This document shows, piece after piece, positions 5,001 to 64,000 of a DNA stretch of 64,000 bases. The DNA comes from Hyaloraphidium curvatum SAG 235-1 (taxonomy: Eukaryota; Fungi; Monoblepharomycota), in contig JAIVFI010000014.1 in the NCBI GenBank assembly GCA_025558095.1, positions 620,001-684,000 of the forward strand, given 5' to 3'. Positions within the stretch are counted from its first letter, which is position 1; every line of letters starts with the position of its first letter. The translations under genes and the position numbers were made by a program. A model generated the notes under the pieces. The model saw only the letters and a list, made by a program, of their open reading frames with translations. It did not search any database and was not told where the DNA came from.

Positions 5001-6486
5001 TTACCCCGGGCATATCGACTCGACGGTGAAAAACACCCCGGACCCGTGCAGCACGGACCAGAACCCCAGGCTGACCGTGAAAACCGTCACCACGAGAGTC
5101 CTAAGTACGCCGAACGAGGCCGTGAACCCCAGGAATGACGCGCGCGCTCCCTCGACGTCGCAGAAAGAGGCAAGCAGCCGCTCGTGCTCGCGGAGGAGCT
5201 TCAAGACCCCCTCTTTCCCGTCCCCCGGCGTGCTTAGGCAGCGCTCGCGCACCAGCATCGCGCGTATCTCGGTCCGCGCGCGGCGGTACAGGGCGACGAT
5301 GGCGTCGATCTGCTGGTTCGATTGGGCCATGTGGGCGACGTCGGTGCACACGATCGTGAGGATCCAGTAGAGCACGCAGAGGGTGTAGAGGGTAACGCAG
5401 GAACCGACGCCCAAGTTGATGAAGAGCGGCACGAAAGCCATGACTGCCCCGAGTAGGACCAAGTACCGCCCAGTGATCATGAAGGGTATACGTGACTGCC
5501 AGGTGCTCGCAAAGCCATGGTGGAGACGTGCGTAGAGGTCGGAAGGCGGGCTGTCGTTGTGGCCTCCGGCCGGAGCTGCGTAGAGGCCGGAAGGCGGGCT
5601 GTCGTTGTGGCCTCCGGCCAGAGCCAGATCGAAGCCCTGCAGCAGATCCTCGAGGGCGATCTTCATTGCACGGCGCTGCACACGGAGCGACAGCGTTAAG
5701 AGCGCCGCGTTGGTGGGGAACCGCGCCAGTACGTTTATGGGCAGGACGTTGACCACCGCCAGTACCGCGAGCGCCCCAGGCAGACCCCACCACGAACGCC
5801 AGAAGGCGGCGCCGTCGGCGATGAGCGGGTTCCACATGACCAAGAAGGTGGCGGCGCCCATGACGAGGCCGCGAGAAATCGCTTCCAAGAGGTGGAGGAC
5901 CGCGGCCCGGTGCGCCAGCGGGCCCGCGCACGCGTCTCCGGGGGACGGGCAAAGCGAGTCTTTCTCGCGATGCCGGAGGAGCGTTGAAGATGGATCATCG
6001 GCGAGCCGCGACCAGCGCGCCAGGCTGGCGAGCGCGTGTCCCGAGTAGTCCCCTGTGGAAGGCCGCATGCGGCCGTGGTGTTTGAACGCAGACAGGAACG
6101 GCGTCAGCGGCGAACCCGGACAGCGGCACCACCACGGCGGCGACGATCCCGCCAATCAGCTGCGCATTGCGGCGCGGGTCGAAGACGGCAGCCGAGCCGA
6201 TGACAACAGCCGAGAAAACCAGATTCGCGAGATGCCGTTCGACCATCCGTGCACCCCAGGGCGCGAATAAGAAGACCGTCCGCGCCTCAAACCGCAGCAG
6301 CGCGCTCCGCAGGCCAACTTCTGCGAGCAGCATGTCGCGGTCCAACGTAGGCGGTGCCGGCAGTGTGGGGGATGCGTCCTCGCGGAGGAACACGTCCGAC
6401 TCGCGAGGCGGCACGTGCGCCGGCAGGATCGCCGCCCACTCGGCGGGCGAAAAGCTCCCTTCCCGCTTCGGTTGCATAGAATCCAT
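5001..6486 (-). CDS. 7-TM family member 1 (GR-like/DUF3537-like candidate); frameshift or unresolved intron near 6100
   Basis: N-terminal FSPAEWAAILP; LLRHREKDSLCP; C-terminal ASFLGFTASFGVLRTLVVTVFTVSLGFWSVLHGSGV..ICPG*. The two halves lie in different frames and I found no phase-compatible intron. Confidence 0.7.
5531..5620. repeat. 48-bp in-frame tandem duplication (AGGHNDSPPSGLYAAP / AGGHNDSPPSDLYARL)
   Basis: cgtagaggYcggaaggcgggctgtcgttgtggcctccggcc occurs at 5531 and again at 5579. Confidence 0.9.
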
Positions 6487-6590
6487 CGCAACTGTCTCGT
6501 CCGACCACGGCGCAAAGGAGGCCACTGACCAGCCACCCAATCCCTTGCGGCCTTTCCACAGACGTTTCCACGCGTCTCCCAGTCGCGACA

Positions 6591-8161
6591 ATGGGCCCAC
6601 CGGGCGACAAACCGCCCTTCTTCTCCGCGACCGAATGGGCCGCGGCATTCCCCTCCCCGCCTCCTCCCGAGGCAGAGCCCCTCGACGGCGGGCCCGCCCC
6701 GCGCGACTTTGCCGAGGCACTGCGGACCGACCTGACCCTCGACGACGTCGCGCGGAGCCTCGGGGACTTCCCGCTGCTGCGCGGGCAGATTCGCGTCCGC
6801 CAGAAGTTCCTATGGATGATCCCGCTGCAGCCTCTGCGGCACTTTGTCTTTGCCGCCCTCGTGACGGGTTGCCTCGCAACCTCCGTCGGGGCTGAGGGCG
6901 CCGCGTCGGGCCAAAAGGAACTGATCGGTGGATTCATAGTCGCTACTTTGGCCAGCTTTGGTTTCTTTTTCGTCTCGGTTTCAGTCGTCACGATTCTTCA
7001 AAAGGGTTTCCCGGAGCAGCTGGCGGGAAACCCAATCGTGGCAACGGGGAAGATCGTCCTTGGTGTCTTAACTGATCCGGTCTCGTGGAATGCCGTGCTT
7101 CCGCCAAGCAAGGTCGCGCTGAACGTCGCTCCGCTATCGCTGGCGGCGTGCAGGGCCGCCCCTGTCCCCCACGCGGCCGGCGCGGCGGTCTTTTCGTCGT
7201 GCTGCTGCCCGGACTGCATCGCCGAATTGCTCCGGAAAACAGGCATCCAGTGGCTGCTCGACAATGCCGTGCGGTGCACCGTTGGGTGCGCAATGGTGGT
7301 CATGTTTCTGTGGACACCGTCCGTTTCGGTGGGGACCGTCTGGCAATCATGGTGGGGAATGCTTCTATTTGCTCTTATGGTTGCTGCCGGCGTCCTGGTG
7401 TGCTTCGAGGCTTTTGTCTTTCTGCCCTCTGACCTCGTGCTTTCGCGCATCTCTGGACGTTTCCAGCTCTACCTTCTTCGCCGGTCTCTGAGCGCGCTGT
7501 TGCTACGGGCAAAGGATGCGGTTCAACGTGATGCGCCCTTTGTCGGTCCGGGAGAGCTCTGGGACAGCGCAGTGGAGCCTTACATGGATCTGCATGCCAG
7601 CATGGCTGCCTGCTGGCGAAAGGCCTTGTTGTCCACGGCGTTCTTTCCCTGGCAGCTTCCTTTCCTGATCTTGCTGTATTTGTTGGCCATGGTGGTCAAT
7701 CTGGTAGGTCTTGGCTCAGTACTAGCGTTCCTCTCTCACCAACCGTCGGCCTTGTGCAGGCAATTGGTGCCTGCCTCCCGGCCTACGCCATCACCGGCAC
7801 CTGCTATTGCTTCTCCATGCTCCTCCTGGACCTCTGGACCTTCGCGGCCGTCAACGCCGAGGTCACCGCCGCCGCCTCGCTGCACCTCTCCGCCGTCTCG
7901 ACGCTGCAGCGGCTCGCCATCGCCGCCTCGCCCCCCGACCGGCCCGCCTCCCCGCTCGCCGCGCACCTGCTCGCGCACGAGCGGGCGATCGCGGGGTGCG
8001 CGGAGGAGGGGCTGAGGAGCAGGGTCAGGTTCCTGGGGCTGTTTGTGGTCGACTACGGGTCCATGCGGGGGCTGCTGATCACGGTGGCGACGGTCGGGTT
8101 CGCGTTCGCGGGGTTCCTGAGGGGTTTCGGAGTTACGGTGACCATGGACGCGTTCTGTTGA
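6591..8161 (+). CDS. 7-TM family member 2, intron 7704-7759
   Basis: FSATEWAAAFP; CCCPDC loop; spliced VNL|AIGAC; C-terminal RVRFLGLFVVDYGSMRGLLITVATVGFAFAGFLRGFGV..AFC*. Confidence 0.8.
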
Positions 8162-8437
8162 CCTCAATCAGATGGAGACGTCTGGACCCGGATCTTCGTC
8201 TGCTTGCTTTGTATGAACGGCTTCGTGCGATCGAGGCTGTCCGACCCTAGCACGGACACCAGGTCGTGCAACTTCTGATCCGTTGCCTGGATGATCTATT
8301 CTAGCCCATCTGCGAGCTCTAGGTGACGAATCAGCGATGATCTGGTGTCCTCTTAATGACGTGAAAATGGGACCGCCGTCCACCGCATCTCCACCCGACA
8401 CCTCCTTCTCCACACGGCCCCGGCCGCCCTCGCCGCG

Positions 8438-9611
8438 ATGAGCTCCCCGGACGGCTCGCGCGGCGCCCCTTTCCGCCGGCGCGAGCAGCCGGCGGCGGAG
8501 CCGGACCTCAACTTCTTCCGGCCGGGCGCGCTCGACGCGTCGCGCGCCGGGCCGTCCCACGCGGCCGCGGAGGGCGCGCAGCGGCCGCCCGCCGCCCCGC
8601 CCGACCCCGCGCCGCCGCCGCAGCGGAAGCGGTACCGCCCCGAGAACGACGACACGCTGTACGTCCTGCCGCCCGACCCGAACTCGGCCAAGCAGGCAGA
8701 CGCCCCCGCCGCGCACCGCCCGCCCAACGCCGCCGCCCGCCCTCCCAACGAGCCCGCGCCGCTCCCGGCCCGCGCAAACCCCGCCGCCGTGCTCGTCTCG
8801 CCCACGCAGCGCGGCAACCCCGTGTTGGACTGCGTCCGCAACGTGCCGTGGGAGTTTTCCGGCGACTTTCCGGCGGACTACCAGCTCGGCCGCACCTGCT
8901 GCGCGCTGTTCCTCAGCCTGAAGTACCACCGCCTGCACCCAGAGTACCTCGCCGGGCGCGTCGCCCGCTTGGGGAGGATGTACGCGCTCCGCATCGTGCT
9001 GGTGCTCGTGGACGTGGAGGACCACGAGAAGCACCTGCGCGAGGTGCACGCGACCTGCGCCGCGGGCGGGTGCACGGCGGTGCTGGCGTGGTCCAACGAG
9101 GAGGCCGGGAGGTATTTGGAGACGTTCAAGGCGTACGAGAACAAGGGTCCGGATGCGATCAAGGCCAGGGTCGAGGACGGGTACCTGGCCAGGCTGACGG
9201 GGTTCCTGACGAGCGTGAAGGGGGTCAACAAGACGGACGTGGTGTCGCTGGCGTCGAGCGTGGGGGTGGGTGGCTTGCGGCGCTTGTCTGGTTCCGGCAG
9301 GACTTGACGCACACGACGCAAACCCACAGTCGCTCCGCTCCATCATCCAGGCCCCCAAGGAATCCCTCCTCGCCGTCCCCGGCTTCGGCGACACCAAAGC
9401 CGGCAAGCTGCACGCCGCCTTCCGGCAGCCTTTCCGGATCGACCGCTCCGGGCGGGCGCGGGACCGCGCAGCCGCCGAGGCAAGGGATGATGCGGCGGGG
9501 GGACCGAGGGCGGGGAGCCCCGACGCGGACGGGGAAGGGGACGGGGAGGAGGGGGTGCAGCCGCTGGGGAGGGATCCGAGCGACGAGGAGGGGAGCAGCG
9601 GGGAGGAATGA
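8438..9611 (+). CDS. RAD10: ERCC1/Rad10/Swi10 excision-repair endonuclease subunit, one intron at about 9266-9329
   Basis: VLVSPTQRGNPVL, ALFLSLKYHRLHPEY, LAWSNEEAGRYLETFKAYE, VKGVNKTD, and an HhH motif VPGFGDTKAGKLHAAFRQPF. Confidence 0.93.
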
Positions 9612-10160
9612 GGCTCTGGCACGGTCGAGTGTTCTAGATTCTGTGGATTCCGTTCGCCCTTCCGCCGCGATCCCAGCCCGGTCGCGTCTAAGACTCCCAT
9701 CCGCCAATGGTCAGGCTCACCGGCATTCAACATTCCCAAGACGCATTCGTCCCCGATCAGCGGTCAGCCTGCGGCCCGCCGCGGCAGTAATCGCGGTGCC
9801 GTGGCCAGTCTTTCGCTCCGTCCACGTTGTCGAGGAATTCAAAGAATTGTTGCCCTCTCTTGTTGCCCTGTCTTTCTTTTCTGGTTGGTTGGTGCTAGCC
9901 CTGTCCCGTTTGCTAACAGCACCAGCCTTCGCGCCGGTCGGTCGCCCGGCCAGGCCCCGCCCGCGATCCCTCATCTCGCCGCAGCCGTTCCCACTCTCTC
10001 CCCTGCCCCCTCCCGTGCCGTGACCGTCGCGATGGCCTGATTCTCGGGCCCATAGTTGCCGGCCGAGTGGTTCTGAGGCGGATCTGACCGCGCCGCGTGC
10101 CCATCGGGCCGCAGAAATTCGCCCGCCATCGTTGAGGGACCATTGCAAGCGGATCGCGCC

Positions 10161-16368: not shown

Positions 16369-17667
16369 TCAACCGCCCGCGCCCTCCCTCCCGCGTCGAT
16401 CCCGCGGCGGCCTGCACCGCTCCCCCGGCGGCCCCCAATCATCGACCACCAACGGCTTCCCCGTGTCCACACAGTCCGTCCTATTCCGCTGCCTGACCAT
16501 GCTCATGTAGTGGTTGATCCTCGCGGCGTTGGGGTCGGCGCGGACCGCGTACGGGGTGTGGCGGGAGGTGGATGCGCGGAGGCCGCGTAGACGGTGCACG
16601 TCCGGGGCGGACGAGGTGCGGGTGCGAAAGTAGGCTTTGGGTGCTTTCCAGCATAGGTCGGGGAAGCGCGCCGACACTGGGGAGGGGCCGCCGAGGTGCG
16701 TGAACAGTGCGCGGTCGAGGACCACCTCGTCCGGTTCATCGGGGGCGTCCAGGTAACCAGCGAGGGGGAACCCGGAGCGGCATACGACGTACTCGTCGGG
16801 GTCAATGTGCAGGGCCCATTCGGCCGATTCCCGCGCCACGGCGAGGCAGTGGTGCAACGCCGCCGTTTGCTGGGTCGTGTCGCGGGGAGACGAGACGGGC
16901 ATGCCGTGCCAGCGGGGAAAGTAGCGGACATCGCGGCCGGCGGCGACGAGTGCGGCAGCTGTCGGTGCGAACGAGCCGTCGACGTCGTACATTACAGCGG
17001 CGTCGGCGGCGCCGTTGGAGAAGTGATGCTCGAGCCAGAAGCGGGTGGCGTCGGGTATGTGGTTCTCAAGCGCGGAGCGGTTCCAAAGGGCCTGCGTACA
17101 GATCACGACCTTGCCGGCGCCGGCAGAGGGGTCGAGTGCGACGACGTCGAGCTCGAAAGCCGCCCGGAACCCGGCGCCGTCCGCGATTTCCACCGCCAGC
17201 GAGCGTCCCACAAAGCCCCGCAGCGAATGCAGATTGGCAGCCGTCAGCGGGCACAGCAACCGCGCCAGGTCGCGCGTGTGCGGCTGGACGGCGACCGCCG
17301 TACCCGCGCCCAGGGCCCCCTTTTCGCCCAGCGCGAATTTCGGCGCGGTCGAGAACGCGTCCGAAATGAGGATCACTTTCTGGCTAAGCCGGGGTTCGCC
17401 CGCGACGAGGAAAAACGCGAGCTCCACGAACACCGCCGCGCTCCCCGGCCGCCCCGTCGCGCTCCCGCCTGGCGACAGCACGTCCAGCGATGCGGCGACG
17501 AGTGTCCACCCCGCACCGTGCACGGGGGCCCAGTTTCGGGTCCGCACGCCGAGCACCGCGCCTGCCGGCGGCAGCGGCGGGCCCGGACCCGAAAGGAGCC
17601 AGAGATACAGCGCTGGCAGCGCGAGCGCGGGCAGAACCGCGTACGCCAGCAATGTACGTCGGCGCAT
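16369..17667 (-). CDS. GT92/DUF23-like family A copy 2, intronless
   Basis: MRRRTLLAYAVLPALALPALYLWLL anchor; WLEHHFSNG; ALHHCL; HIDPDEY; RINHY. Confidence 0.72.
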   Translation of the reverse strand: MRRRTLLAYAVLPALALPALYLWLLSGPGPPLPPAGAVLGVRTRNWAPVHGAGWTLVAASLDVLSPGGSATGRPGSAAVFVELAFFLVAGEPRLSQKVILISDAFSTAPKFALGEKGALGAGTAVAVQPHTRDLARLLCPLTAANLHSLRGFVGRSLAVEIADGAGFRAAFELDVVALDPSAGAGKVVICTQALWNRSALENHIPDATRFWLEHHFSNGAADAAVMYDVDGSFAPTAAALVAAGRDVRYFPRWHGMPVSSPRDTTQQTAALHHCLAVARESAEWALHIDPDEYVVCRSGFPLAGYLDAPDEPDEVVLDRALFTHLGGPSPVSARFPDLCWKAPKAYFRTRTSSAPDVHRLRGLRASTSRHTPYAVRADPNAARINHYMSMVRQRNRTDCVDTGKPLVVDDWGPPGERCRPPRDRRGREGAGG

Positions 17668-18323
17668 CGGTTCCGCCGCGACTCGTGGACGCCAGTCAGC
17701 CGTTGGTGTGAGCAATGGGACGCCCTTTTTTTCAGATCCTTTTCGGAGTGCGAGTCCGACACACATTGCACACAGCCGGTGGTCCCCATACCCGTAACCC
17801 AGGCATGTAGAGAGGCGCGATATCGCCGACGCCCGTGCAGGATCAAACCGAGCCCGCTCACCGTACTGCTGCCGCCATGCCCGTGCCGCCTGCCAGCCGT
17901 GAATGATGCTCACCTGAAAGAAGTCCGGAGGGGGGCCGTCGGGGTTAGAGTTGCCGGGGTGGCTGTAGTAGCCGTTGTAGGGGTACAAAAGGGCAGTAAA
18001 CGTCAGGAAATCGCAGCTGGCAGGCGGATCTTGGCGGCACGCGGCAGCGAGGCGACAGACGGCGGCGGCGGTGACGGTGGCAGATTGGGTCCTGAAACCA
18101 GGCGGGGACACAGTTAGTTCGATCGCCCAAAAACCTGGTAGAGCGAGTAGATCAGTTTGCATCTTGAAGTGAGCTCTGGACCGTCACGGGTTCCACCAGT
18201 GCACCGTCCTGGAGCTGGACACTCGGAATGCCATCGCTAGTATCATCTGGAGCTCAAGTTAGAGACGATGAGAGGAGGGACGCATCACTCAAAAGAGCGA
18301 GATGATTAGATGTGGATTATCGT

Positions 18324-18691: not shown

Positions 18692-20446
18692 TCATTCGGG
18701 CACCACGAGCCGCCGCAACCCCGCCGCCGCCGCCGGCACGTCCCTCATCAACCCCCCCACGCCCTCCCTGGCCTTGGCGTCCAGCGATCCCCATCCGCAG
18801 CCCGCGCCGCCCTGCAGGTATGCCTCCGACCCCGGGCCGGCGGGGAGCCGGGGGAGCTTATCCGGGAGCGCGATCGCGGCGCCGGCGGGGACGTCCCGCT
18901 CCGCGTAGGCGATCCGGACGGCGACCGCGCCCCCGCAGGCGCGCCATTCGGCGACGCGGAGGCCGGGAGGGATGGCGGAGCCGCGGAGGGAGGAGTCGGC
19001 GAGCAGGCGCGGGAACAACGTGTGCGAGGCGGGGAGGAAGCCGGGGGGGGGGAAGAAGGCCGCGGAGCCGGCGGGCATCGCCGTGCGGAGGCGGGAAGGA
19101 TCGGCGGTGGGGAGCACGGTCGAGTTGAGGAGGTTGCATTGCTCGAGTAAGGCTGCTGCGGGGGAGGCGAGGAAGGCCTCGACCGAGGGCACGGCCAAAT
19201 GCACGGTGAAGAGGGGGTAGTGCAGCGCGAGCGCGAGCACGGTCGCAAGCGTGGCGTCGGCATCCTTCCTGTCCAGCGAAGCCATGCGCACGATAAAGTG
19301 CAGCCGCAGGCCCGCTGCCCATCGCGCAAATGTGGACGGCCAGGCCGCGCGGAGATGCCACGCGCGGGCGGCGACGGGGTTGGCGAGGGTCCAGATGCCG
19401 CGGTCGGAGGCGTCCAGCGCCGCGCCGACCACGCGGAGCACCTCACCCGGATCGGCGAAATCCGCGCGGTATTCTCTGGGCACCGGAATGTCCTCGTCGA
19501 AGCTCACCCCCGGCACCTTTGCGTTGGGCACGACGGGAACGGCGCCCAGCATCGCGGCCTCCATCGGCCCGCGCTCGAAACCGGGGAACCCGGCGTCGAG
19601 GTACACCTTGGCGCGGGAGTAGAGGCACGCGATCTCGGTGATGTTGAGGCGGCGGCCCTTGCCGGCGTCCTTGAGGGTGACCACCTCCACCGCGGGCGTG
19701 CGCAGCGCCTTTATGGGCTCGCGGATGCGCGAGTCGAAATCGGGGAGGCTCACCGTGTCGGAATCGACGACCACCAGGTCCTTCTTCTCCGGGCACCCGC
19801 GGCCGCCGCACCCCGGCAGGGGCTTACCCGCGCGGCACCGCTCTGCGAACGCGTAGAACCGCGGCTGCATCGGCCGCGTCAGCCCCCCGGGCAACACCAC
19901 AGACAGCTGCTCGTTCATCCTCCGCGTGAGCGGGACGAGGGTCGCCCAGCCGCGCGCCGCGTCCGCGATCTTTTGGGGCGCGACGGGCAGCCCGAGCACG
20001 GCGACCAGCACGCGCACCCCCCGCGCAGCAAAGCCCAGCAGCTCCGCGCGATTGGCGGGCTGCTTGTGTATGTGCTCGGCGACCACGATCACGTCCCCGG
20101 GCGCCAGCAGCGGCGGGGGCCACGCGTCCAGCGGCCGCATGCCGGGGAAGTCCGCGCCGTAGCCGGCGACGTTGCAGCCCGACATCAGCGACGCATAGCC
20201 GGCGGCCAGGAGGGCGGCGTGCCACGCGTGCAGCGAGGCGGGGCCGCCGGTGGTCAGGTTGGCGGGGTAGCGGACGTACACCGTCGCGTTCCAGGGCGGC
20301 AGGGGGGGCAACGCGTCGGCGGGCACGCCGGACCCCGCCCCGCCCCCGTGCCCCGGCCAGGGGGGCCAGCCGAACGCATAGGCCGCGCCGGCAAGCAGCA
20401 GGACGGCGACGAAAGGCCGCCGGACCGCTCGGCGCCGCGGCACCAT
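18692..20446 (-). CDS. Type II membrane protein with GT-B (GT4-like) features, family B copy 1, intronless
   Basis: MVPRRRAVRRPFVAVLLLAG anchor; TGGPASLHAWH; GDVIVVAE; AKVYLDAGFPGFERGPMEAAMLGAVPVV resembles the GT-B nucleotide-binding EA..G.P helix. Confidence 0.6.
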   Translation of the reverse strand: MVPRRRAVRRPFVAVLLLAGAAYAFGWPPWPGHGGGAGSGVPADALPPLPPWNATVYVRYPANLTTGGPASLHAWHAALLAAGYASLMSGCNVAGYGADFPGMRPLDAWPPPLLAPGDVIVVAEHIHKQPANRAELLGFAARGVRVLVAVLGLPVAPQKIADAARGWATLVPLTRRMNEQLSVVLPGGLTRPMQPRFYAFAERCRAGKPLPGCGGRGCPEKKDLVVVDSDTVSLPDFDSRIREPIKALRTPAVEVVTLKDAGKGRRLNITEIACLYSRAKVYLDAGFPGFERGPMEAAMLGAVPVVPNAKVPGVSFDEDIPVPREYRADFADPGEVLRVVGAALDASDRGIWTLANPVAARAWHLRAAWPSTFARWAAGLRLHFIVRMASLDRKDADATLATVLALALHYPLFTVHLAVPSVEAFLASPAAALLEQCNLLNSTVLPTADPSRLRTAMPAGSAAFFPPPGFLPASHTLFPRLLADSSLRGSAIPPGLRVAEWRACGGAVAVRIAYAERDVPAGAAIALPDKLPRLPAGPGSEAYLQGGAGCGWGSLDAKAREGVGGLMRDVPAAAAGLRRLVVPE

Positions 20447-23730: not shown

Positions 23731-24257
23731 GCTCGGCCGAAAGTGAATCCGCCCGGAAGTGTATTGACGAAGCGATGTAAACAATAAAGGGGGAGGTCGA
23801 TCCCCAGCAGGCATCCCCATCGTCCGATCCCGATCGGCACCGATCCGTCCTGCTCACGATGCAAGCAGGAGGATGTTGCGCCGGGGGAGGTCGCCTTCCT
23901 GCGGCGTGACCGTGATCGATCTCGGGGGACGGCCGGGCGCGAACCGCACGCAACGGCATCCGGGCGGGCCGATCGCCGCCGTCCCAGCGGGCAGCCGCAG
24001 CAGGGAGAGGGAGCAGGAGGCGAGCAGCAGCCGGTCCGCGGGTGCCGGATGGGCGATCCGCGCGAGGTTCGGCCGGCGGCGTAATTGTCTTTTGGTCCCT
24101 TCCCGGTTCCCGATAGTGCCTCGTCCCCCTCGTCCCCCGCCGCAGGCCGCCGCGCGACCGCTTCCCCGCCCGTGCAGCCCTCGAGCCCCGCTGCACCCGC
24201 GATGCGCGCCTGAGCCGGCCGATGCCGTTGCGGTCGCCCCTCCCCGACCCGCAAGCG

Positions 24258-31488: not shown

Positions 31489-33005
31489 ATGGCCACCGAC
31501 GCCGACTCCGACGCCGATTTCAGGCCCCTCGAATGGCTCGCGCTGTTCCCGACGCCGTCCCCGCCGATGAAGGAGTTCGGCGACGATGAGCGGCGCGCGG
31601 GCCCCGACGACGCGCCCCGCGCGGCGGACCCGCTGACGCGCGACGGCGTGCTCCGCAACCTCTCCGGCGCGGCGTGGCTCGCCAGCTGGTCGGCGCTGCG
31701 GCTGCACTGCGCGCTGCCGGGCGGGGCGGGCGTCCCCGTGGCCGCGCTGCTCGGCGCAACCGGCTGCGCGCTGCTCGGCCTCGCGCTGCCGCTGGCCGGC
31801 GCCGCGATCGCCCCGAAGGACGCGGCAATCGGCATCGCCGGGGTCGCCGTCATCTGCGCCGGCAACCTGGCCATGTTCGCCGTGTCGCGCCACGGGATGG
31901 GGGCCAACCTGCTGGGGGCGCTCGACTACACCGCGCCCGCCGGGTTGTGCCGCTGGCTCCAGCTGGTGCGGGCGGGCGCCCCGGAGGCGGCGGACAAGCA
32001 CGGCAGCGCGCTCGGAGCCCTGCTGGCCCACGTTCCCGGCGACGAGGACTGCCTGTGCGCTTCGTGCTGCGCATGGGTGCAGAATGCGGCGGGGACCTTG
32101 TCGCTGCTCTACACCTTCGTCTACAACGTCCTACTCGGGGAACTCCTGCTATTTCTGTTTGTCTACACGCCCCTGGTGACGTACGGAACAGCGCTGTGGT
32201 CGACGCCGTACGGAGGCCTGCTCGGTGCGCTGTACGTCCTCGCGATGGTCTCGGGGATCGTCGTCAGCTGGCTGGCCAACCCCCTGGGCGTGGGCAACGT
32301 CGGCTTCACCGCCCTTGAGCGCCGCCTGCACTGCCGCGCCGCTTCCCTGGCCATGGACGACCTCCTCATGCGCTTCCGCGCCGCTGCCGCCGAGGGCAGC
32401 GGCCCTCCGCGGGCATCTTCGTGGTTGTACGTCAGGCTGCACTATCGCTTCGCCGCCATGTGCCGCTCCAGGCGCCGGCAGGACGGGGCGCTCATCTCGC
32501 AGATCTACGGGGCCGTGCTGGTGCCGTGCGTGGTCTTCTTTGCCGTTCTCTCCGCGGTACGTTCTGCTCGATCCCCCGCTCTCGCGCTGATCCGCCCCTT
32601 CCCCCCCGACAGGCCGTCGGCCGCTGCATCCCCGCATGGCAGCTCGTCTACCTCGCCCACGCCGCGATCTACTTTGCCACCAACGCCGTCAACCTCGCCT
32701 CGCGCAACGCCCTCATCGACTCGGTCCTGGGCGTCCACCTCTCCGCCGAGCGGGACCTCCGCACCCTCGTCCTGTCCGTCGGCCCGGGTGCCCTTGCCGA
32801 CGACGCCGCGATGCACTGCTCCGCGCTGGCGTCGTTCGGCGAGGTGCAGCGCCACCGCGCGAGGCTGTTCGGGTTCGTGGTCTCGTACGGCAGCGTGAGA
32901 ACGCTGCTCGCGACGGGGACGACGGTCGCGGTGGCGCTGTGGACCGTGCTGCGCGCGTTCGGGGTGTCGGCGAAATGGGAGAGCTTCTGCTTCTCGGGGA
33001 TCTGA
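31489..33005 (+). CDS. 7-TM family member 3, intron 32557-32612
   Basis: FRPLEWLALFP; PLTRD; RWLQL; LLAHVPGDEDCLCASC; LSA|AVGRC; RARLFGFVVSYGSVRTLLATGTTVAVALWTVLRAFGV..SFC. Confidence 0.82.
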
Positions 33006-41088: not shown

Positions 41089-42720
41089 TCAGCCAGGGCA
41101 TATGGTCTGCGGCGTGAACGAGACCCCGAGTCCCCTAAGCACGGTCCACAGCGCGGCGAGGATGGGTACCAGCGCCACGATGAGGCTCCTCACGGTCCCG
41201 ACGGTGACGCTCACGCCGAGGAACCTCGCCCGCAGTAGCCCGACATCACGGAACGAGTCCAGCAGGTCCGCGTGGTGCTGCATCAGGGCCGCGGTGGGCG
41301 GATCTCGGACGTCGACGAGGAGGCCGAGGATGTCCTGGCGCGCGGCCGTGTAGAGCTCGACGATGTCGTCGATCTGCGAGTTGGCGGCGGCGACGGAGAT
41401 GAGGTCGCCGAGGATGTGGGAGAAGTAGAATAGTTGGATGATGATGCACCACGCGGGCAAGCAGGCGCCGAAGATCATGTAGATGACGGCGCCGGAGAGT
41501 TCCACCGCCATTATGCTGAAGATGCTCTTGTCCGAGTTGGCCGAGAGAACAAACAGGGAACGCCATTGGATGGTGAGGCGGCGGTGCAGCTGTACGTAGA
41601 GCTCTTGGGAAGTGGGCGGGGGATCCGAGCCCTCGGCGCACCTTTCGAGCTTGTACATGAGCGATCGGATGGCCGCAGAACAAGCACGATGCTGCAAACG
41701 GTGCGCAAGCTGGAGCGGAGCGATGGCCGCAGGTCGGGCAAAGAAGTGGAGGAAGATTTGGACGAACGAGTTGCCGATAACTGGATGAAGCGGTGAGTCC
41801 AAGGTGCACAATGATGCCGCACAGCGAAGCAACCCACGGAACCATACGGCAAAGAATGCCCACCACGAATTCCAAAGAAGCGAGCCGAAATAGACGAGTT
41901 GGGTGTAAGTCCGCATGATGAGCACGGCCGTGCCGAACATCCAGAACACGGTAGCATGGAGGAGCCACATGGCGGCGGCAGAGCGTACGACTTCTCCACC
42001 ACAGGAGCGGGCCGCACAGGGGCACAGCCTATCGCCGGGTTGGTGCCGGACCAGCCACGGCGTTTGCGCCCGCGCATCGTCACCGAGCTTTTCCAGCCCG
42101 CCGTTTGTGCCGGCAAAGACCGCAAGTGCCGACCAGCGCGAGAACCCTGCACAGGAGTGGTGGTCGAGGGAAACAGGAGCGGGTCCCGCCTCACGTTTGC
42201 CCTCTGGCCGCGTTTCTCCGTGGCCGGCGTTGCTGCTGAGCTCTGTCCTGAACATGCCAACGAGGAACGTCACGAGGAGAAAGAACTGAGAGATGCAGAT
42301 TGCTGTTGTGCCGGCCACCATGTGCGGGTACGAGAACGCGCCGAGTACGCCGTTGAAGTGCCATAGAGCGACGACGAGCGCCACGTTCGGCAGGGTGGAG
42401 GTAACAAAGATGCGGATTCCCGGCCGCACGATCAGCGGCGTCAGCCAGAGGTGCACCCGCGCCAAAATGCGCAGGAGCGGCCACGGAGAAAGCGAGCGCA
42501 GGAGCACGTCGCGCGTGAGGGGCCGGGCCTCGCGGGCGGGCGCCGCCGGGTCCGCCGCGGCGGCACGCCACGGATGCGGGGCCGGGGGTGCCGGGGGCGC
42601 GGGAAAGAGGCACAACCATTCCACGGGGAGGAGCGAGTCGGGCGGCAGCACATCGAGAGGCCCGTTGGGAGACAGAGCGCCATCGGTCTGCCGTCGCCTA
42701 GAGCTCCCTTCCGCTTCCAT
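41089..42720 (-). CDS. 7-TM family member 4 (probable short in-frame intron at about 41780-41840)
   Basis: LLPVEWLCLFP; PLTRD; LVRHQPGDRLCPCAARSCGG; LYVQLH; RARFLGVSVTVGTVRSLIVALVPILAALWTVLRGLGV..ICPG*. Confidence 0.82.
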   Translation of the reverse strand: MEAEGSSRRRQTDGALSPNGPLDVLPPDSLLPVEWLCLFPAPPAPPAPHPWRAAAADPAAPAREARPLTRDVLLRSLSPWPLLRILARVHLWLTPLIVRPGIRIFVTSTLPNVALVVALWHFNGVLGAFSYPHMVAGTTAICISQFFLLVTFLVGMFRTELSSNAGHGETRPEGKREAGPAPVSLDHHSCAGFSRWSALAVFAGTNGGLEKLGDDARAQTPWLVRHQPGDRLCPCAARSCGGEVVRSAAAMWLLHATVFWMFGTAVLIMRTYTQLVYFGSLLWNSWWAFFAVWFRGLLRCAASLCTLDSPLHPVIGNSFVQIFLHFFARPAAIAPLQLAHRLQHRACSAAIRSLMYKLERCAEGSDPPPTSQELYVQLHRRLTIQWRSLFVLSANSDKSIFSIMAVELSGAVIYMIFGACLPAWCIIIQLFYFSHILGDLISVAAANSQIDDIVELYTAARQDILGLLVDVRDPPTAALMQHHADLLDSFRDVGLLRARFLGVSVTVGTVRSLIVALVPILAALWTVLRGLGVSFTPQTICPG

Positions 42721-43028: not shown

Positions 43029-44628
43029 TCACCCAGGACACACACTCTGCAGCGTCACCGTCACCCCCCCGCCCCGCAGCAGCCCCACCAACCCCACCAC
43101 GACGGTGAAGGCCGCGAGCAGCAGCGTCCGAAGGGCCCCAAACGTCACGACGAAGCCGAGGAACCTGGCCCTGTAGCGCGACGGATCCGCGTAGGTCCGC
43201 AGCGCGGCGGCGTGGCTCCAGACGAGCGTCCTGTCGGTACCGGGAGGGGCCGGGCGGAGAAGGAGGAGGGAGATGCGGTCCGCGGCGGCGAGGTAGAGAG
43301 CTGCCGTGCCGTCGATATGGTGGTTCTGTACAGCGACGGCGCAGAGGTTCGCGAGGAGGCCGTAGCATACAAGGGACAAGCCGGCAATAGTCCACGCAGG
43401 GACACAGGAAGCGCCGAGCTGCAACAGGGCATCAAGTTAGAAGCGCTTCGCGAATGAGCGTCGCTCATGCACGCACTATGTTGATCATCAGGGTCACCAC
43501 TTCGAGCAGAATCCCGAAAGCAAAAACCTTCCGGATGCTGTCGCTGACCGTCCTATGCACACGCCAATCGGAGGTAAGCCACGGATGCAGCCAGGTGTAG
43601 GGTTCCACGGCGGGCGCGACTGCTGGAATGCAATCCAGGTGCCAGCGGGCCTCCAATCGCTTCACCAAATCCGAAAGGGCGAAGGAAAGGAGGCGTCGCC
43701 GAAGACGGTTGGAGATATCGAAGTCGTGTGGCACATACGTTCCGTTGGATATGCAGGTCATCACGAAGGCGTGGATTACAGCACTCAGAGTCGTGAAGGC
43801 GAGAAGGAAGGCTGCCCGAGGAGTGGTCCAGGTGCGCGGAGAAAAGGTCACGCAAATGGTCCAAAGTCCTAGCAGAACCCAGGCACCGAGAGGGCCGCAG
43901 AAGCCAACTACGATCTTCAGCGTCCACGCGTAGTGTGCGTTCTTTTCCGGGATTCCACCGGCGCATTCCTTCCTGGGACACGGGCACAAGGGGTCGTCGG
44001 GGTCGTGACGAAGCAGGCAATCTTCCGTTGCTTTTTCCAGCTCTGGTTCGCCCTCCGAGACTCTGCTGGCATCGACTAGCTGCGCCCATCTGACGAGGTC
44101 CGCGGCCCAGTGGCCGTCCAGGGCAGTGCCGGCGCCGTTGGCGGTTGGACGCCAGCCACCCGAGACAAAGTGAATCAAGGTCCATCCATAGCCGTTAACC
44201 AAGAAAGCTAGTGTTCCGACGGCGAGGTGCCGGGCGCTGAAGGTGCCGTCGTTGAACGGGATGATTAGTATACCAGACGCTAGCAGCACCGACATGTAGA
44301 TCAAGTGGTAAAGCCAAGGCCGCGTATAGCCGCGGGTAAGCTTGATCACGGCGAACTGGAGGGCCAGCTGGGCGCGTTGGAACGGGAACCTCTTGAGCGA
44401 GTCCAGCATCGAGTCCGGCGTAAGGGGCCGCGCCAAACGCGCCGGCAGGGCGGGGTCCGCCGTCGGGAGAAGGAGATCGCGAGGCACGCGCGCGTCTGGG
44501 GCCGGCGGACGCGGGAACACCGCGAGGAAGTCGGCCGGGCCGAGCGTCGCCAGGCGGTCCCCCGCGGGAATCAGGGGCTCCGTGGGGGTTCCGGCAGGCT
44601 GGGAGGCAGAAAGCTCCATCTCTAACAT
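43029..44628 (-). CDS. 7-TM family member 5, intron 43419-43476
   Basis: LGPADFLAVFP; PLTPD; RWAQL; LLRHDPDDPLCPCPRKECAG; INI|LGASC; RARFLGFVVTFGALRTLLLAAFTVVVGLVGLLRGGGV..VCPG*. Confidence 0.82.
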
Positions 44629-44811: not shown

Positions 44812-45678
44812 ATGCGCTCCGACGACGCGACCTGGAGCGCGGTCTCCCAGGTCCTCGGTTGGTCCTTCTTCTTGGCCTGGAGCCTCTCCTTCTGGCCGCA
44901 GGTGGTCCTCAACCACCGCCGAAAGAGCGTCGCAGGCCTGAGCTTTGACTTTGTTGCCCTGAACCTGCTCGGATTCGCGTGCCTGACGGGGTACACCGCG
45001 GCCTTCCGCTTTTCCGATGCGGTCCGCGACGAGTATGCAAAGAGACACGGCGGTGCACCGCCCCTTGTGGACGCCAACGACCTCGTCTTTGCTGCGCACG
45101 CGTTCCTGGCGACCGCTGTCGTGGTGTTGCAGGTGATCTTCCTGGACCGCGGCGGGCAGCGCGTGTCGCCCTGGGCGTGGGCATTCCTCGGGATTGCAGG
45201 CGGGGTGCTGCTCGCCACATCGGGTACCGTGGCGTTTGCGGACGGTAAGCTCGGCGGGACGCGGCTGGAGTGGCTCGACGTGGTCTACGCGGCCTCGACG
45301 GTCAAGCTCCTCGTGACTTTGGTCAAGTACCTGCCCCAAGTCGTCCTGAACTACCAACGGCGATCGACTGCAGGCTGGAGCATTACCAACATCTGGTTGG
45401 ACGCCACCGGCGGCGTGCTCTCCCTGCTCCAGCTTCTCCTGGACGCGGCCGTGTCGGGGCACTGGGAGGGCGTAGTGGGGAATCCCGTCAAGCTGGGCAT
45501 GTCGTTTCTCAGCCTTGCATTCGACGCGTTTTTTTTCGTGCAGCATTACGCGTTGTACGGTCCGGGGAAGGCGGCGGACGAGGAGGTCGGGAATGGGATC
45601 GCCGAGGACGGGCAGCCTGCGCGAGGCGGGAGAGAGACGGACCCGCTGCTCGGGCCGAGGCCGGCGGTGCCTCGCTAG
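44812..45678 (+). CDS. ERS1: Cystinosin/Ers1-like PQ-loop lysosomal/vacuolar transporter
   Basis: LGWSFFLAWSLSFWPQVVLNHRRKSVAGLSFDF, NDLVFAAHA, KYLPQVVLNYQRRSTAGWSI, GNPVKLG and QHYALY. Confidence 0.9.
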   Translation: MRSDDATWSAVSQVLGWSFFLAWSLSFWPQVVLNHRRKSVAGLSFDFVALNLLGFACLTGYTAAFRFSDAVRDEYAKRHGGAPPLVDANDLVFAAHAFLATAVVVLQVIFLDRGGQRVSPWAWAFLGIAGGVLLATSGTVAFADGKLGGTRLEWLDVVYAASTVKLLVTLVKYLPQVVLNYQRRSTAGWSITNIWLDATGGVLSLLQLLLDAAVSGHWEGVVGNPVKLGMSFLSLAFDAFFFVQHYALYGPGKAADEEVGNGIAEDGQPARGGRETDPLLGPRPAVPR

Positions 45679-45957
45679 CTGGCACCGCTGTGACTCTTTA
45701 CCGGTGCGCGAACGGACACTGACTCTAACTTGCGCTGCGGAAGTCTGATCCGCGCTACCGCCGCTCCCTACCTTGCAAGCTGTGCCGCGGAGCGGCCCCG
45801 CGAGCGCCAGCGAGCCCCGCGGCAGCGGGCGCGTACCCACGCCGCAGGCAGGCACGTTATGGCAAGCGTCATTGAACCAAAGCTATGGCCAGTAGTTGCT
45901 TGACAGCATCAGGGAGCTTGTTACGGCATATAGCACGTCTATGTCTCTTGCTCTATC

Positions 45958-48145
45958 CTATCGCGGCTCCCCATGGCCGTTCACCAGCGATGCATCGCTC
46001 CCGAGCGGCACATCGACCATCTCCCCCGCGCTTGTCCCCGCGCCGTGCCCCGCCTCGAGCTCCGTCACGCTCCTCGCCACCCCCCTCGACAAGCCCAGCT
46101 TGGCCGCCTCGGGCAGCGTCTCGAGCGGCAGCGCGAAGCATATCCCAGCGGCAAAGACCAGGATGCCCGCGGACACGAAGGGCAGCAGCGCGTTGCGGTA
46201 CCACACGTCCGCCGAGAGCAGCGCGCCGCTCATGGTCGGGGCGAGCATGGAGGAGAAGCGGCCGAGGGACATGGCGAGGCCGAGGAGCTGCGTGCGATGC
46301 GCAGTGGGGTACAGTTCGGGCGTGTAGAGCCAGAGGGCGGTGGATGAGATCTGCCAGCCGACGTTGAAGAGGACGCTGGTGGCTCTGCGGATCTGGAGTC
46401 AGCTGCGATCGGCGTTTCCAGGGGAATGGGACCCACAGGCTGCCGGCCTCGAGAGCAGCATGCTGAGAGGGATCGTTCTTGGCGGCCTCGAAGGCGACGG
46501 CACCGAAACCGGCGAGCGAGGCGGCCATGAAGAGCGTGGCGGTCCAGATGGTCCCCACGCGCCCCAGGGGCGGCCAGTCGAGCATGTACCGGCAGACGAC
46601 GGCGGAGGGGATGGCGGCGACTGTAAGGGCATGGTGAGTGGGCTGTAGCGGACAACCGGTGGTTGATCCCACCCGTGTAGATGACGAGGTCGCGATACGT
46701 AGCGCTCTCGTTCGTCAGGCCCATGTTGGTCAGGAGTACGGCAAGGAAGCTGCTGAATGAGACTCCGCCCAGGTAGTAGACGAACCAGAAGATGAAGAGG
46801 AGGATGCTCGTGGTGCGGAGCAACGGATCGTTCGCCACCGCGGCGTTCCAAGTGTCCCGAACCGAGGCGACGGCAAACTTGACGCCGTCGAGCACCTTGG
46901 TGAACCAGTTGCGGTTGTCGACGCCCTTTTCCACCACCACGCGATTCCGCGGCTCCCTCCCCGCGCCGACGCCAAAGTGCTCCTCGAAAGCAAACTCCTC
47001 CTTCTCCCCCAGCGGATCCCGGTTGTACTCTGCCACCCGCCTCAGATCCCTCGACGCCCCCTCCCAGTCGTCCTTGGTCGCGGAAAAGTACGGCGTCTCG
47101 TACAGCGGCAGCAGCAAGCGGCGGCACGCGAGCATGACGAGATTGATCCCGGCCAGGATGAGCGTGAACACGCGCCACGAGGAGGTGCCGACGTAGGCGG
47201 GGTGGTCGAAGAGGGTGAGCTCCAAGGGCATGATCGCCCAGGCGAGGAGCGAGGGGACCACGGAGCCGCACCAGAAGATCATGTTCCTTTTCGGGCGCGG
47301 GGTCAGACAGCGGATGGGCGCCGGTGTCGGTCGCGGACTTACATGTAGGACATGACGGAGCCCATTTCCTTGGGGATCCACTCGAGGAAGAGGCACGAAT
47401 CCAGGGCGACGTTGCCTCCGTAGGACATGCCCAGGAGCGTCGCGAACACGCACACGCCGCCGAACGCGGGCATGAGGGCCATCAGGATGCCGCTGAAGCC
47501 GCAGAGGCCGAGGGTCACGCCGAATGTCAGCCGGCGGCCGTAGTAGGCCGCGAAAGCGCCCCAGATGATCTCGCCCAACGCGGAGCCGAAGTAGAACAAC
47601 GTGAGCATCAGACCTGTCATGCTGGGGGAGAGGTTGAAGGCCGCCGTGATCCCGGGCATCATGAAGGAGATGCCCGTCCACCACAGCGCGTCGTTGGCCC
47701 AGCCCAACGAACAGAGAGCAAATAGTCGGTGCTGGTAGCGGCCGTAGCCGACCCGCCGCAGCGCCTCCTCGATCCAGTCCTCGTGCGTCTTTTCGTGCGG
47801 CAGTTTTCCTGCCGAAGTCTTTGCCCGCGTGTCCGCCGACCGCAGCTCCAGCGCCACGGAGCCCGCGACCGAGGCGCCGAAGGCCTGCATCGGCGTGTTG
47901 ATGTCCGGCACCACCGAATGCACCCGCAGCGCCTCGGCCACGGTATGTGCGCGCCGGGAGCTCGGCTTCTCGGGGGCCGCCTTGACGGGCACGGTCTTCG
48001 ACGACGGGGGCAACGCTGCGGCCGCCGGGGACGCGGAGCTCGCGGCGTCCCCTGGCGCGTGCCGCGTCTCCTCCGAGAGCGGCATCGCGATGGCCGTCCT
48101 CGCCATCTCCGGAACCGCAGCGCCCGCAGGCAAATTGGCGTCCAT
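45958..48145 (-). CDS. MFS transporter (SV2/SVOP-like sugar porter family), multi-exon
   Basis: VGYGRYQHRLFALCSLGWANDALW, YGRRLTF, GGNVALD..FLEWIP, SWRVF, ETPYF, YTPELYPT, and many hydrophobic helices. Confidence 0.85.
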
Positions 48146-48471
48146 CGCTGCCGCAGCAAGGCAAGAGCCGAGAGATGTGTTGGCCAGGGTCGTCGATCCG
48201 AGCGCCCCGCCCGCGCAACAAAGGTCCCCCGCTTCCCGCTCCCTGGCCAGCCAGCGACACAGGCAGCGGCTTCCGTTCCTAATGATGGCCGATCGATGGA
48301 CAGGCGGCGATAGAAACCCATCTTTTCGCTATAAGACATCCGCTACGCCGGTTGAAACCGTATGGAAAACCGCCCCGTCCTGCTTCCTTCAAATGTAGAG
48401 CCCCCGATTCGTCCGATCCTGCTTGATTCATCTGATCTCTTCTTCTTGAACGAAAAGAAACCTCGGAATCT

Positions 48472-62391: not shown

Positions 62392-62729
62392 ATGCGCGGT
62401 GTTTGGGCGGTTTTGCGGTGCGGAATCGAGATCAAGGGGGATGGGAAGGGGATTGTTGGCTTTTTGACCGAGCGGTCCAACGCGCTGGTCGCGGTCCGAG
62501 GACAAAAGCCTGCGCACGAAGCTGGCCGGCGACAGCTTTCCGCGCCTCGCGCACACGAAACACCCGGCGCCCGATATCATGAGCGACGACATCAACGCCG
62601 CTGCCGCCGGTGAGGCCGGCTCCGGCTGGGAAGCCATGGACCGGCGGTTGTGCGTGACGTGTCCGAGCGGTTCGCGCTCGGCTGCGGCACGGACGCTTCC
62701 ACGGATCTTCTGAACAGCGGAAGCTTTCT

Positions 62730-62869
62730 CTGACAATTGCGACTACTGGGGGCTCCAAGGGAAGCTCAGCAAGTGCGACCGGTGCCGCGTTGCTCTTTAC
62801 TGCGGGTCCGATTGCCAGCGCAAGCAGTAGGTCGCCCACAAGGCCAAGTGCTTCGAGGCAATGCCTTAG
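62730..62869 (+). pseudogene. MYND zinc-finger remnant, paralogous to the 52940 gene
   Basis: CDYWGLQGKLSKCDRCRVALYCGSDCQRKQ*VAHKAKC: the second Cys is replaced by W, and TAG at 62828-62830 replaces the conserved Trp. Confidence 0.8.
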
Positions 62870-63028
62870 CGTGCCGTGACAGAGCGATGCTGATGTACTC
62901 GGGCGGATGGGAATCTAATCGCACTGGCGACGGCCGCGTCCCTCGCGCGTCTCTTCTTTGTCCCCCATTGCAGTAGTCTCGTGCCTCGAAGGCGCAGCGT
63001 CGCTCCGTCCCACGCGGTGCCGCCACAA

Positions 63029-64000
63029 ATGGAAGACCCGAATACTGAATTTGGCGATCGGGACGACGGCCCGGCCGCCAAGGACGGCCTGAACGGCGCG
63101 CTGCCCGACTCCGGCGCGGCGCGCCTCACGGACCTCGAATGGCTGGCTCTGCTGCCCGCCCGACCTCCGCGCCCCCAGTCTCTGCCGTGGAAGGTCTCTC
63201 CCACGCCCGACCCGGCGGCGGAGGTCCGCCATGAGGACCCTCTGACGGCCGCGCGGCTGTTGGCCATTTTGTCTCCAGAACCCCTTCTCCGGCGCTGGGC
63301 AGGGCTCCAGCTCTGGTTTCAGCCCTACGTCCCCTTCTTCTTTGTGCACTGGCTCTCGGAAATCGTCCAACAATCTTCGTTGTTCATCGCCATACCGCTG
63401 GTTGCTACTGTCGAAGGCGTCACCTTCACGACGCGCCAAATGGTGACCGGACTCGTCGCTCATACACTGTGCAATGCCTTGTATGTCGCTGCTGTTATCC
63501 GTAGCGGCGTTTTCCAGCGCAAGCTGCTGCGGGAGGAAGCCGGCGATGCCGCAGGCCTTAAGGACTCTAATACCCTGGATCGGTCCGACATGGGCCACCT
63601 TGCACGCTGGCTCCAATTGACCTCGGAGGGGGACGCTTCGGAACGCGGCGGCGCCCTTCTGGCCCACCGCGAGGATGACGCTTGGTGCCCCTGCAGCAGA
63701 CCTTCCTGCGGTGGCAACGAAGCGAAAAGGGCGGGGCTGTTGGCGGTCGCGCACGCAACAGGATGGCCCGCCGTCCTGGGCGTGGCCTATGCCCTCTTCC
63801 AACCATACACTCAAATCGTCACCTTGGCCCCGTTCACGTGGACGCAGGCCTGGAGCGCGAGCACCGCAGCGCTGATGCTGGCTCTGCTCGTGACGCTCTT
63901 CTATGCCATACCGGTGGCCATATTCAGCCACGCAAAGAGCCTACCCACTCTTGGACTAGAAGGGCGCATGCAGCGGCGCTCTTTCTCGTTGGCATTGGCA
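63029..64000 (+). CDS. 7-TM family member 6, runs off the window end (absent from the ORF track)
   Basis: My translation: MEDPNTE..LTDLEWLALLP..PLTAARLL..LARWLQL..LLAHREDDAWCPCSRPSCGG..YTQIVTLAPFTW..LEGRMQRRSFSLALA. Confidence 0.8.
   Translation, partial: MEDPNTEFGDRDDGPAAKDGLNGALPDSGAARLTDLEWLALLPARPPRPQSLPWKVSPTPDPAAEVRHEDPLTAARLLAILSPEPLLRRWAGLQLWFQPYVPFFFVHWLSEIVQQSSLFIAIPLVATVEGVTFTTRQMVTGLVAHTLCNALYVAAVIRSGVFQRKLLREEAGDAAGLKDSNTLDRSDMGHLARWLQLTSEGDASERGGALLAHREDDAWCPCSRPSCGGNEAKRAGLLAVAHATGWPAVLGVAYALFQPYTQIVTLAPFTWTQAWSASTAALMLALLVTLFYAIPVAIFSHAKSLPTLGLEGRMQRRSFSLALA

Follow-up and report, generated by a model that had tools for sequence, protein, structure and literature searches.

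A large family of seven-helix membrane proteins with a predicted insect-receptor-like fold in the fungus Hyaloraphidium curvatum

Large repertoires of ligand-gated seven-transmembrane ion channels (7TMICs) are so far known only from animals, mostly insects with their odorant receptors (OR), Orco and gustatory receptors (GR). Outside animals, 7TMICs are reported with one to a dozen copies per genome and no known function (PMC7746228; 10.1101/2023.08.30.555482). The only fungal members reported are one candidate gustatory receptor-like (GRL) gene in each of two Spizellomyces species (Benton, Dessimoz and Moi 2020, PMC7746228), and in Himmel, Moi and Benton 2023 (10.1101/2023.08.30.555482) the "Fungi" comprise Chytridiomycota and Blastocladiomycota only, with no expansion described. 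Here we describe a 64,000-nucleotide stretch of the freshwater chytrid fungus Hyaloraphidium curvatum (C14:620001-684000 in the 31.9 Mb genome assembly; hereafter the window), which contains six copies, A to F, of a large family of divergent seven-helix membrane proteins. The initial annotation compared these proteins with insect GR/OR and plant DUF3537 channels. This likeness is structural only: it is supported by full-length structural matches, and at the sequence level Pfam, a profile search of PDB and the search for the GR motif of the seventh transmembrane helix (TM7) were all negative. With moderate confidence, and by analogy with the insect receptors, we propose that the family members would be subunits of tetrameric, ligand-gated channels of the 7TMIC type, serving as a chemoreceptor-like repertoire.

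The predicted fold was obtained for the intronless copy F and for database proteins of the family; the spliced copies B-E were used exon by exon in the searches. The AlphaFold model of F has a predicted local distance difference test (pLDDT) value of 88.8 and a predicted template modelling score (pTM) of 0.88 (47 family sequences), and that of P0021, a protein of another subclade, has pLDDT 94.1 and pTM 0.92 (128 sequences). In an exhaustive comparison of the F model with 48,161 PDB representatives, the first eight ranks went to the eight insect OR/Orco/GR representatives, with Z 9.3-12.6 over 302-347 aligned residues and a root-mean-square deviation (rmsd) of 5.1-6.0 Å. Residues 71-517 of F align colinearly with the whole OR/Orco/GR chains, and the lower-ranked rows cover at most 181 residues. 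The P0021 model, aligned in the same way, matches OR/Orco/GR over the full length with Z up to 12.5 and 300-343 residues; interleaved with these are partial matches in which its cytoplasmic helices align with syntaxin-like bundles. After realignment of the Foldseek candidates, the top 18 entries were all OR/Orco/GR, including Orco (6c70) with Z 10.4 over 343 residues. Insect OR/Orco/GR (6c70, 7lic, 8v02, 8vc1, 8jm9) gave the best matches and the only full-length ones among those listed, with Z 8.5-12.6 over 300-347 residues, and no GPCR or transporter fold, which the initial annotation had named as refuting its proposal, competed with them among the PDB representatives.

Among the predicted models of the ESM Atlas, the nearest were a cnidarian cluster (TM-score by query/target 0.52/0.66), DUF3537 (0.52/0.61), 7tm_6 (0.48/0.64) and 7tm_7 (0.46/0.61), together with a 932-residue Chlorophyta cluster (0.53 by query); the next unrelated family falls to 0.32. 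Language-model features list DUF3537 at 0.91, as a lead only. The structure comparison proposed in the initial annotation returned insect OR/Orco/GR as the best, full-length matches and DUF3537 as a match in predicted models, and the models support a 7TMIC superfamily fold for these proteins.

The membrane topology was derived from 108 members. The four predicted outer segments contain on average 0.06-0.5 Lys plus Arg and the inner ones 5.6-9, and the positive-inside rule therefore predicts the N-terminus inside and the C-terminus outside, with the N-terminus as the initial annotation had expected; the N-out arrangement did not occur. Seven membrane helices were found where about seven hydrophobic segments had been noted. 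The N-terminus is not hydrophobic, with the first hydrophobic window near residue 110 of F, in agreement with the absence of a signal peptide. The long TM4-5 loop (a cytoplasmic region of about 80 residues) and the very short TM5-6 loop (4 residues) were likewise recovered. Mean lengths of the outer loops are 4, 18 and 4 residues and those of the inner regions about 60, 70 and 65. The anatomy of copy F, in protein residues, is as follows.

1-84, cytoplasmic N-terminus with the motif F..EWLALFP...DPA...R...PL
About 105-129, TM1
135-162, TM2
163-230, cytoplasmic TM2-3 loop, with RW.QL and then H213-x3-D217-x2-C220-P-C222-x4-C227
231-257, TM3
258-275, outer TM3-4 loop, WT..VT.....W...W
276-301, TM4, extended by a cytoplasmic helix at 305-348
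359-403, TM5
404-407, outer TM5-6 loop of 4 residues with C405
408-456, TM6, with a near-invariant Asn at 432
461-484, TM7a, cytoplasmic
485-494, 7a-7b link, RARFLGF consensus
495-518, TM7b
519-531, outer tail containing C529

TM4-6 are long helices both in F (276-301 with 305-348, 359-403 and 408-456) and in P0021 (231-254 with 260-291, 305-348 and 353-403), and both models show a kink or break in TM4 where it leaves the membrane. TM7 is split into the cytoplasmic 7a and the membrane helix 7b: helices 461-484 and 495-518 with a 10-residue link in F, and 408-424 and 441-464 in P0021. The split TM7 with the strongest conservation, on which the initial annotation relied, was thus present in the models, an unsplit TM7 did not occur, and 7b is the most conserved helix. 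The conserved C-terminal block reads RARFLGF.V..G..RT...T..T...GLW..LRG.GV..T....CP over the family, close to the block first noted. The A..N..ID.I element, originally described as a helix after TM6, was retained as a motif (Asn in 119/123 members) that prolongs TM6 into the cytoplasm and not as a separate helix. Of the six structural hallmarks given by Himmel et al. (10.1101/2023.08.30.555482), five are present in the predictions. As to the sixth, a re-entrant TM0, short helices that may correspond to it precede TM1 (64-80 and the first part of 85-129 in F, 50-77 in P0021), and the structural alignments begin there.

Two features are particular to the family. The TM2-3 loop (60-70 residues) carries His-x6-Cys-x-Cys-x4-Cys, with Asp at His+3; 121-122 of 123 members retain each of the four His and Cys positions, and 116 retain the Asp. 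Since the topology places this loop in the cytoplasm, the His-Cys3 motif is a candidate zinc site. In 117/123 members, a Cys in the TM5-6 loop occurs together with one at the C-terminus. Besides the 7a-7b hairpin, strands occur in both models only in the TM5-6 loop and in the C-terminal tail, so that a disulfide between this loop and the end of TM7b is plausible; the extracellular Cys pair is therefore a candidate disulfide in the predicted structures.

The family evolves under purifying selection. The ratio of nonsynonymous to synonymous substitution (dN/dS) is 0.25-0.49 in the 12 closest intronless pairs, and it exceeded 0.51 in no region when eight pairs were pooled, as expected from constrained coding genes. 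The lowest dN values of the pooled pairs are those of TM7b (0.14), of the 7a-7b link and the TM5-6 loop (0.16 each) and of the C-terminus (0.17), and the highest those of TM3 and TM4 (0.41) and of the TM4-5 linker (0.52). Conservation over the 108 members is highest in TM7b (0.595, the top helix), the TM5-6 loop (0.68), the 7a-7b link and the C-terminus (0.52), with 0.47 in the TM3-4 loop, and lowest in TM1-TM5. The periodicity of TM7b conservation, considered as a test for a pore face, was weak (reached by 183/2000 shuffles) and was left unused as evidence.

A tblastn search with copy D recovered exactly six paralogous loci in the window (27-38% identical to D, E 1e-5 to 1e-34), at the positions where the initial annotation had placed six divergent paralogs. 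The large and diversifying repertoire that was then surmised is confirmed in its size. The six-frame genome search with D yielded 727 first-look candidates, of which 80 were scored and 80/80 matched. The DNA pattern for H-x3-D-x2-C-P-C was detected at 312 loci of the genome versus 2 for the reversed control, and 35 of 40 sampled pattern sites gave open reading frames (ORFs) matching the family hidden Markov model (HMM). The exact H-x3-D-x2-CPC motif is present in 84/122 annotated full-length members and in 3/6 window copies; scaling the 312 loci by the 84/122 share gives a family of about 450 genes. Among 1.84 billion representatives (50% identity), the family profile detected 469 protein clusters with a threshold of E<=1e-3 and 418 with E<=1e-10, and ten of ten sampled clusters were H. 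curvatum singletons annotated "hypothetical protein".

The family has so far been seen only in H. curvatum, in the ten sampled clusters and in the following searches. Word-indexed homolog searches gave 3 matches for one protein and 1 for an alignment, all from H. curvatum, with a swamped candidate list. Metagenome scans with GLWS[VIL]LRGxG and HD[PA]xDxLCPC gave 90 and 48 pattern matches, none of them a relative, at a low sensitivity that leaves absence unproven.

A tree of 128 members separates the window copies from one another by 2.9-3.9 substitutions per site, against a family median of 3.15, and gives every one of them nearer kin outside the window. The window cluster is therefore old, and recent local tandem duplication was rejected, the six copies being as distant from one another as from the rest of the family. 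Several contigs have local clusters of 5-6 copies in about 30-40 kb (for example the motif-hit clusters C1:704002-736648, C5:784007-816919 and C12:691306-732400), plus dispersed singles. In the listed genome matches, 75/88 are stop-free and a few copies carry in-frame stops.

Transcription was detected in one public run, in which 88% of the words sampled from 41000-46900 occur and whose contigs cannot rank expression levels. The intron of copy D is removed in the run contigs at the joint 41780/41838, with 57 nucleotides (nt) skipped (CT..AC on the plus strand), and that of copy E at 43418/43477, with 58 nt skipped. Because the contigs lack the introns of D, of E and of a neighbour gene, the run is RNA and shows transcription of D and E, with splicing that agrees with the models. 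All four RNA-confirmed introns of the 41000-46900 stretch are 52-58 nt long, with GTG(G/C)G at the 5' and CAG at the 3' end.

The mechanically called ORFs differ from the real gene models, with frame breaks or introns in A-E and with F running out of the window. Five copies look intact and one (A) is broken; E and D are arranged in tandem, and A and B head to head. The gene models, in window positions, are the following.

5001..6486, minus strand, copy A: N-terminal part from the ATG at 6486 and C-terminal part corresponding to the ORF 5001-6155, in different frames
5529..5618, minus strand, tandem repeat in copy A: two 42-nt copies at 48-nt spacing with one mismatch (48-nt tandem duplication)
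6591..7703, plus strand, copy B exon 1: 371 codons, phase 0
7704..7759, plus strand, copy B predicted intron: 56 nt, GTAGGT..CAG, with a CTCAC branch-like site
7760..8161, plus strand, copy B exon 2: TM6, TM7a, TM7b, C-terminal Cys and stop at 8159-8161; model of 504 amino acids
31489..32556, plus strand, copy C exon 1
32557..32612, plus strand, copy C predicted intron: 56 nt, GTACGT..CAG
32613..33005, plus strand, copy C exon 2; model of 486 amino acids
41838..42720, minus strand, copy D exon 1: N-terminus to the middle of TM4, phase 1
41781..41837, minus strand, copy D intron: 57 nt, GTGGGT..CAG, in frame and stop-free, spliced in an RNA contig
41089..41780, minus strand, copy D exon 2; model of 524 amino acids
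43477..44628, minus strand, copy E exon 1, from the first ATG
43419..43476, minus strand, copy E intron: 58 nt, phase 0, spliced in an RNA contig
43029..43418, minus strand, copy E exon 2; model of about 513 amino acids
63029..64000, plus strand, copy F, intronless, 531 amino acids, continuing to the window-equivalent position 64621 (C14:683029-684621 = L033:265-1857)

In B, C and E the frame breaks directly 5' of the conserved G.C(I/L/V)PA and is restored by one phase-0 GT..AG intron of 56-58 nt. Its position and phase are identical in the three copies; the intron of E is confirmed by RNA contigs, and those of B and C are predicted. This phase-0 intron just 5' of TM6 is common to B, C, E and many genome copies. 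For copy B, the most divergent of the six and with an altered spacing of the His/Cys motif, an alternative intron of 41 nt (7719-7759) is likewise predicted to preserve the frame.

The ORF 41089-42720 of copy D is 95% identical to the H. curvatum NCBI protein DFJ74DRAFT_669064. ORF finders read through the D intron because it is in frame and stop-free, and the same kind of insert occupies this site in two other paralogs. The NCBI model P0001 omits the D intron but begins at an internal Met, losing the first 133 residues with the N-terminal motif and TM1. RNA contigs span 42583-42935 and take in the upstream ATG of D at 42720.

Copy A is probably a pseudogene. Its frame changes between about 6138 and about 6050, after an N-terminal part of 125 codons. 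Rescue by an intron was rejected, and A was treated as frameshifted, because no GT..AG intron of 40-99 nt brings the frame back. A has Ser where 122/123 members keep Cys, and its closest relative is P0005 (44% identity). The tandem repeat of A codes AGGHNDSPPS(G/D)LYA twice within the TM4-TM5 cytoplasmic region. The start codons of A and B are separated by just 104 nt (window 6487-6590). The closest pair of the genome, C14:38288-39778 (minus) and 40290-41822 (plus), 81% identical, is likewise head to head, and head-to-head copies may share a bidirectional promoter.

Residue 490 of copy F, within the RARFLGF stretch joining TM7a to TM7b, is Asp, a position occupied by Gly in 96% of the family; F also has Phe in place of the usual Trp of GLW. 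Its closest relatives (L002, L004 and L025) retain the Gly at position 490.

Ordinary genes surround the family copies, namely those for a PQ-loop protein, a nucleotide-sugar transporter and a GT2 glycosyltransferase. The neighbouring genes are the following.

16369-18162, minus strand, GT2 glycosyltransferase ORF, between family copies; E 2e-5, under the Pfam cut-off
39032-40582, plus strand, nucleotide-sugar/UAA transporter ORF, between family copies; Pfam E 4e-8
44812-45678, plus strand, intronless PQ-loop (cystinosin-like) gene; Pfam E 8e-34
45808-46900, minus strand, neighbour gene; two GT..AG introns of 52 nt each, at 46385-46436 and 46621-46672, are confirmed by an RNA contig

A single RNA contig extends from copy E (minus strand) over the PQ-loop gene (plus strand) to 45750. 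The depth has a sharp peak of 1347 at 45531-45727, and several loose contig ends were found at 45703-45751. The ORFs 8168-9739, 18692-20446, 23873-26221, 26492-28018, 28638-30056, 34572-36845 and 46230-48260 had no Pfam match. The guanine-cytosine (GC) content across the window is 63-77%, and these long Pfam-less ORFs may be GC-driven spurious frames.

The family shares with the insect OR/GR the seven helices with N-terminus inside and C-terminus outside, the very short outer loops, the TM4-6 helices reaching into the cytoplasm, the split TM7, the strongest conservation in TM7b and the greatest variability in TM1-4, and a large, divergent multigene repertoire. It differs from them in the identity over structural alignments (6-12%), the lack of an HMM match and of the GR TM7 motif, about 80 extra N-terminal residues with the EWLALFP motif, the TM2-3 loop of 60-70 residues with His-Cys3, the outer Cys pair and the fungal host. 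The chytrid proteins SpunGRL1 and SpalGRL1 of Spizellomyces resemble it in seven predicted TM helices, an intracellular N-terminus and a mostly unconserved TM7 motif, with one of four motif positions conserved (PMC7746228). These are single genes per species, found through GRL/DUF3537 sequence similarity, whereas the H. curvatum family has about 450 members and no detectable sequence similarity to Pfam 7tm_7 or DUF3537. Plant DUF3537 (PF12056) proteins resemble the family in predicted structure (TM-score 0.52/0.61 over 361 residues), in language-model features (0.91) and in lacking the TM7 motif (PMC7746228). Unlike them, the H. curvatum members have no PF12056 match; in plants, DUF3537 families comprise 4-12 members (PMC7746228). 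The long loop of DUF3537 is intracellular loop 3 (IL3; IL2 in green algae; PMC7746228), whereas in the H. curvatum family it is IL1 together with the TM4-5 region. IL1 also differs from that of the Class-B PHTF-like 7TMICs (10.1101/2023.08.30.555482), being just 60-70 residues long with its own His-Cys3.

We found no paper joining Hyaloraphidium with gustatory receptors, and none of the papers found that use the term 7TMIC since 2023 describes a fungal expansion. We found no report of a 7TMIC-like family this large in a fungus, single fungal candidates having been reported previously.

Several observations weigh against the interpretation of the family as 7TMIC-type chemoreceptors. The Pfam search of 47 members at E<=10 gave no 7tm_6, 7tm_7, Trehalose_recp or DUF3537, the family profile had no receptor match in PDB sequences, and the GR/GRL TM7 motif (T/S)Yhhhhh(Q/K/E)(F/L/M), called diagnostic but not definitive (PMC7746228), was found, strict or relaxed, in the last 70 residues of 0/122 full-length members. 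A Pfam search of the mechanical ORFs of the window gave no relevant family, and genome-wide searches with PF12056 and PF08395 (the latter six-frame) gave no match, with the controls silent too, hence uninformative. The structural scores are moderate, the best Z of 12.6 being under the caution line of about 13 for helical bundles with an rmsd of 5-6 Å. Foldseek matches to PDB are weak (E 0.015-0.02, TM-score 0.28-0.41), with insect GR/OR filling the first eight or nine ranks, and the Atlas comparison sets prediction against prediction. Near-invariant Arg residues stand at both ends of TM7b; they are not known from insect pores, and they may indicate a different selectivity or no pore at all. 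H. curvatum is described as non-flagellate, so that classical chemotaxis cannot be the output.

Convergent likeness, in which an unrelated lineage-specific seven-helix family has a function unreadable from insect receptors, would fit the missing sequence similarity at any threshold tried, the absent TM7 motif, the Z values within the helical-bundle caution range and the Foldseek TM-scores below 0.45, and unrelated four-helix bundles do reach Z 9-10.5 as partial matches. Because of this range of Z, the fold argument rests on full-length colinearity, exclusivity and the agreement of two models and three branches. We consider convergence improbable, since the full-length (>=300 residues) colinear matches listed are solely 7TMIC for two independent models, 7tm_6, 7tm_7 and DUF3537 all match in the Atlas with the next family at TM-score 0.32, all checkable hallmarks (N-in, short outer loops, long TM4-6, split TM7, TM7b conservation) are present, and chytrid 7TMICs are already documented (PMC7746228). 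A selfish or decaying family, as transposon cargo or a pseudogene swarm with no cellular function, could be suspected from the broken copy A, the few genome copies with in-frame stops and a copy number very high for a 32-Mb genome. This was rejected as very implausible on divergence, dN/dS, conserved introns and transcription: the copies are 27-38% identical and those of the window 2.9-3.9 substitutions per site apart, dN/dS is 0.25-0.49, the introns keep their position and phase, D and E give spliced transcripts, ordinary genes lie around the copies and 75/88 listed matches are stop-free.

A 7TMIC fold with a non-chemosensory role is less probable; the proteins would then act in self/non-self recognition, in defence against cell-surface attack by parasites or viruses or in the gating of internal compartments, for instance, with the variable part binding proteins or lipids and not small ligands from the environment. 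The fold evidence for such a role is identical, and the functions of non-animal 7TMICs are not known (PMC7746228; 10.1101/2023.08.30.555482). Conservation, not variability, marks the outer loops and the C-terminal tail (TM3-4 0.47, TM5-6 0.68, C-terminus 0.52), dN/dS is <=0.51 in every region, and the conserved N-terminal cytoplasmic motif and the His-Cys3 loop point to cytoplasmic partners. Against it, variable TM1-TM4 with conserved TM7b and anchor is the pattern of insect receptors (10.1101/2023.08.30.555482), and a set of hundreds of expressed paralogs, old, divergent and under moderate purifying selection, looks like a receptor repertoire.

In the chemoreceptor-like channel that we favour, the long cytoplasmic extensions of TM4, TM5 and TM6 with TM7a would form an anchor-like bundle. 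By analogy with the solved insect receptors, four subunits would assemble through this bundle and TM7b would line the central pore, and the variable bundle of TM1-TM4 with TM6 in each subunit would bind a small ligand, opening the pore. The analysis shows paralogy, family size, transcription of D and E, purifying selection and the predicted fold and topology; homology with the 7TMICs, the tetramer, ion conduction, gating by ligands and a chemosensory use are inferred. Tentatively, we propose that the insect-receptor fold would have expanded independently in this non-swimming unicellular fungus to about 450 expressed, ligand-gated channel genes, a sequence-orphan clade of 7TMICs with regulatory modules of its own, a cytoplasmic His-Cys3 metal site and an extracellular disulfide clamp on the pore helix.

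The family genes are mostly intronless or have one short intron and the host is a small culturable fungus, so that cloning is easy and the question of channel function in non-animal 7TMICs is directly testable; the invariant His-Cys3 loop and the Cys pair are concrete handles for structure-function work. If true, the proposal would assign several per cent of the H. curvatum genes to this family, the largest such repertoire outside animals. An expressed and selected family of about 450 members with the 7TMIC fold would be the second independent large radiation of this fold, and large 7TMIC chemoreceptor repertoires would not be an animal invention.

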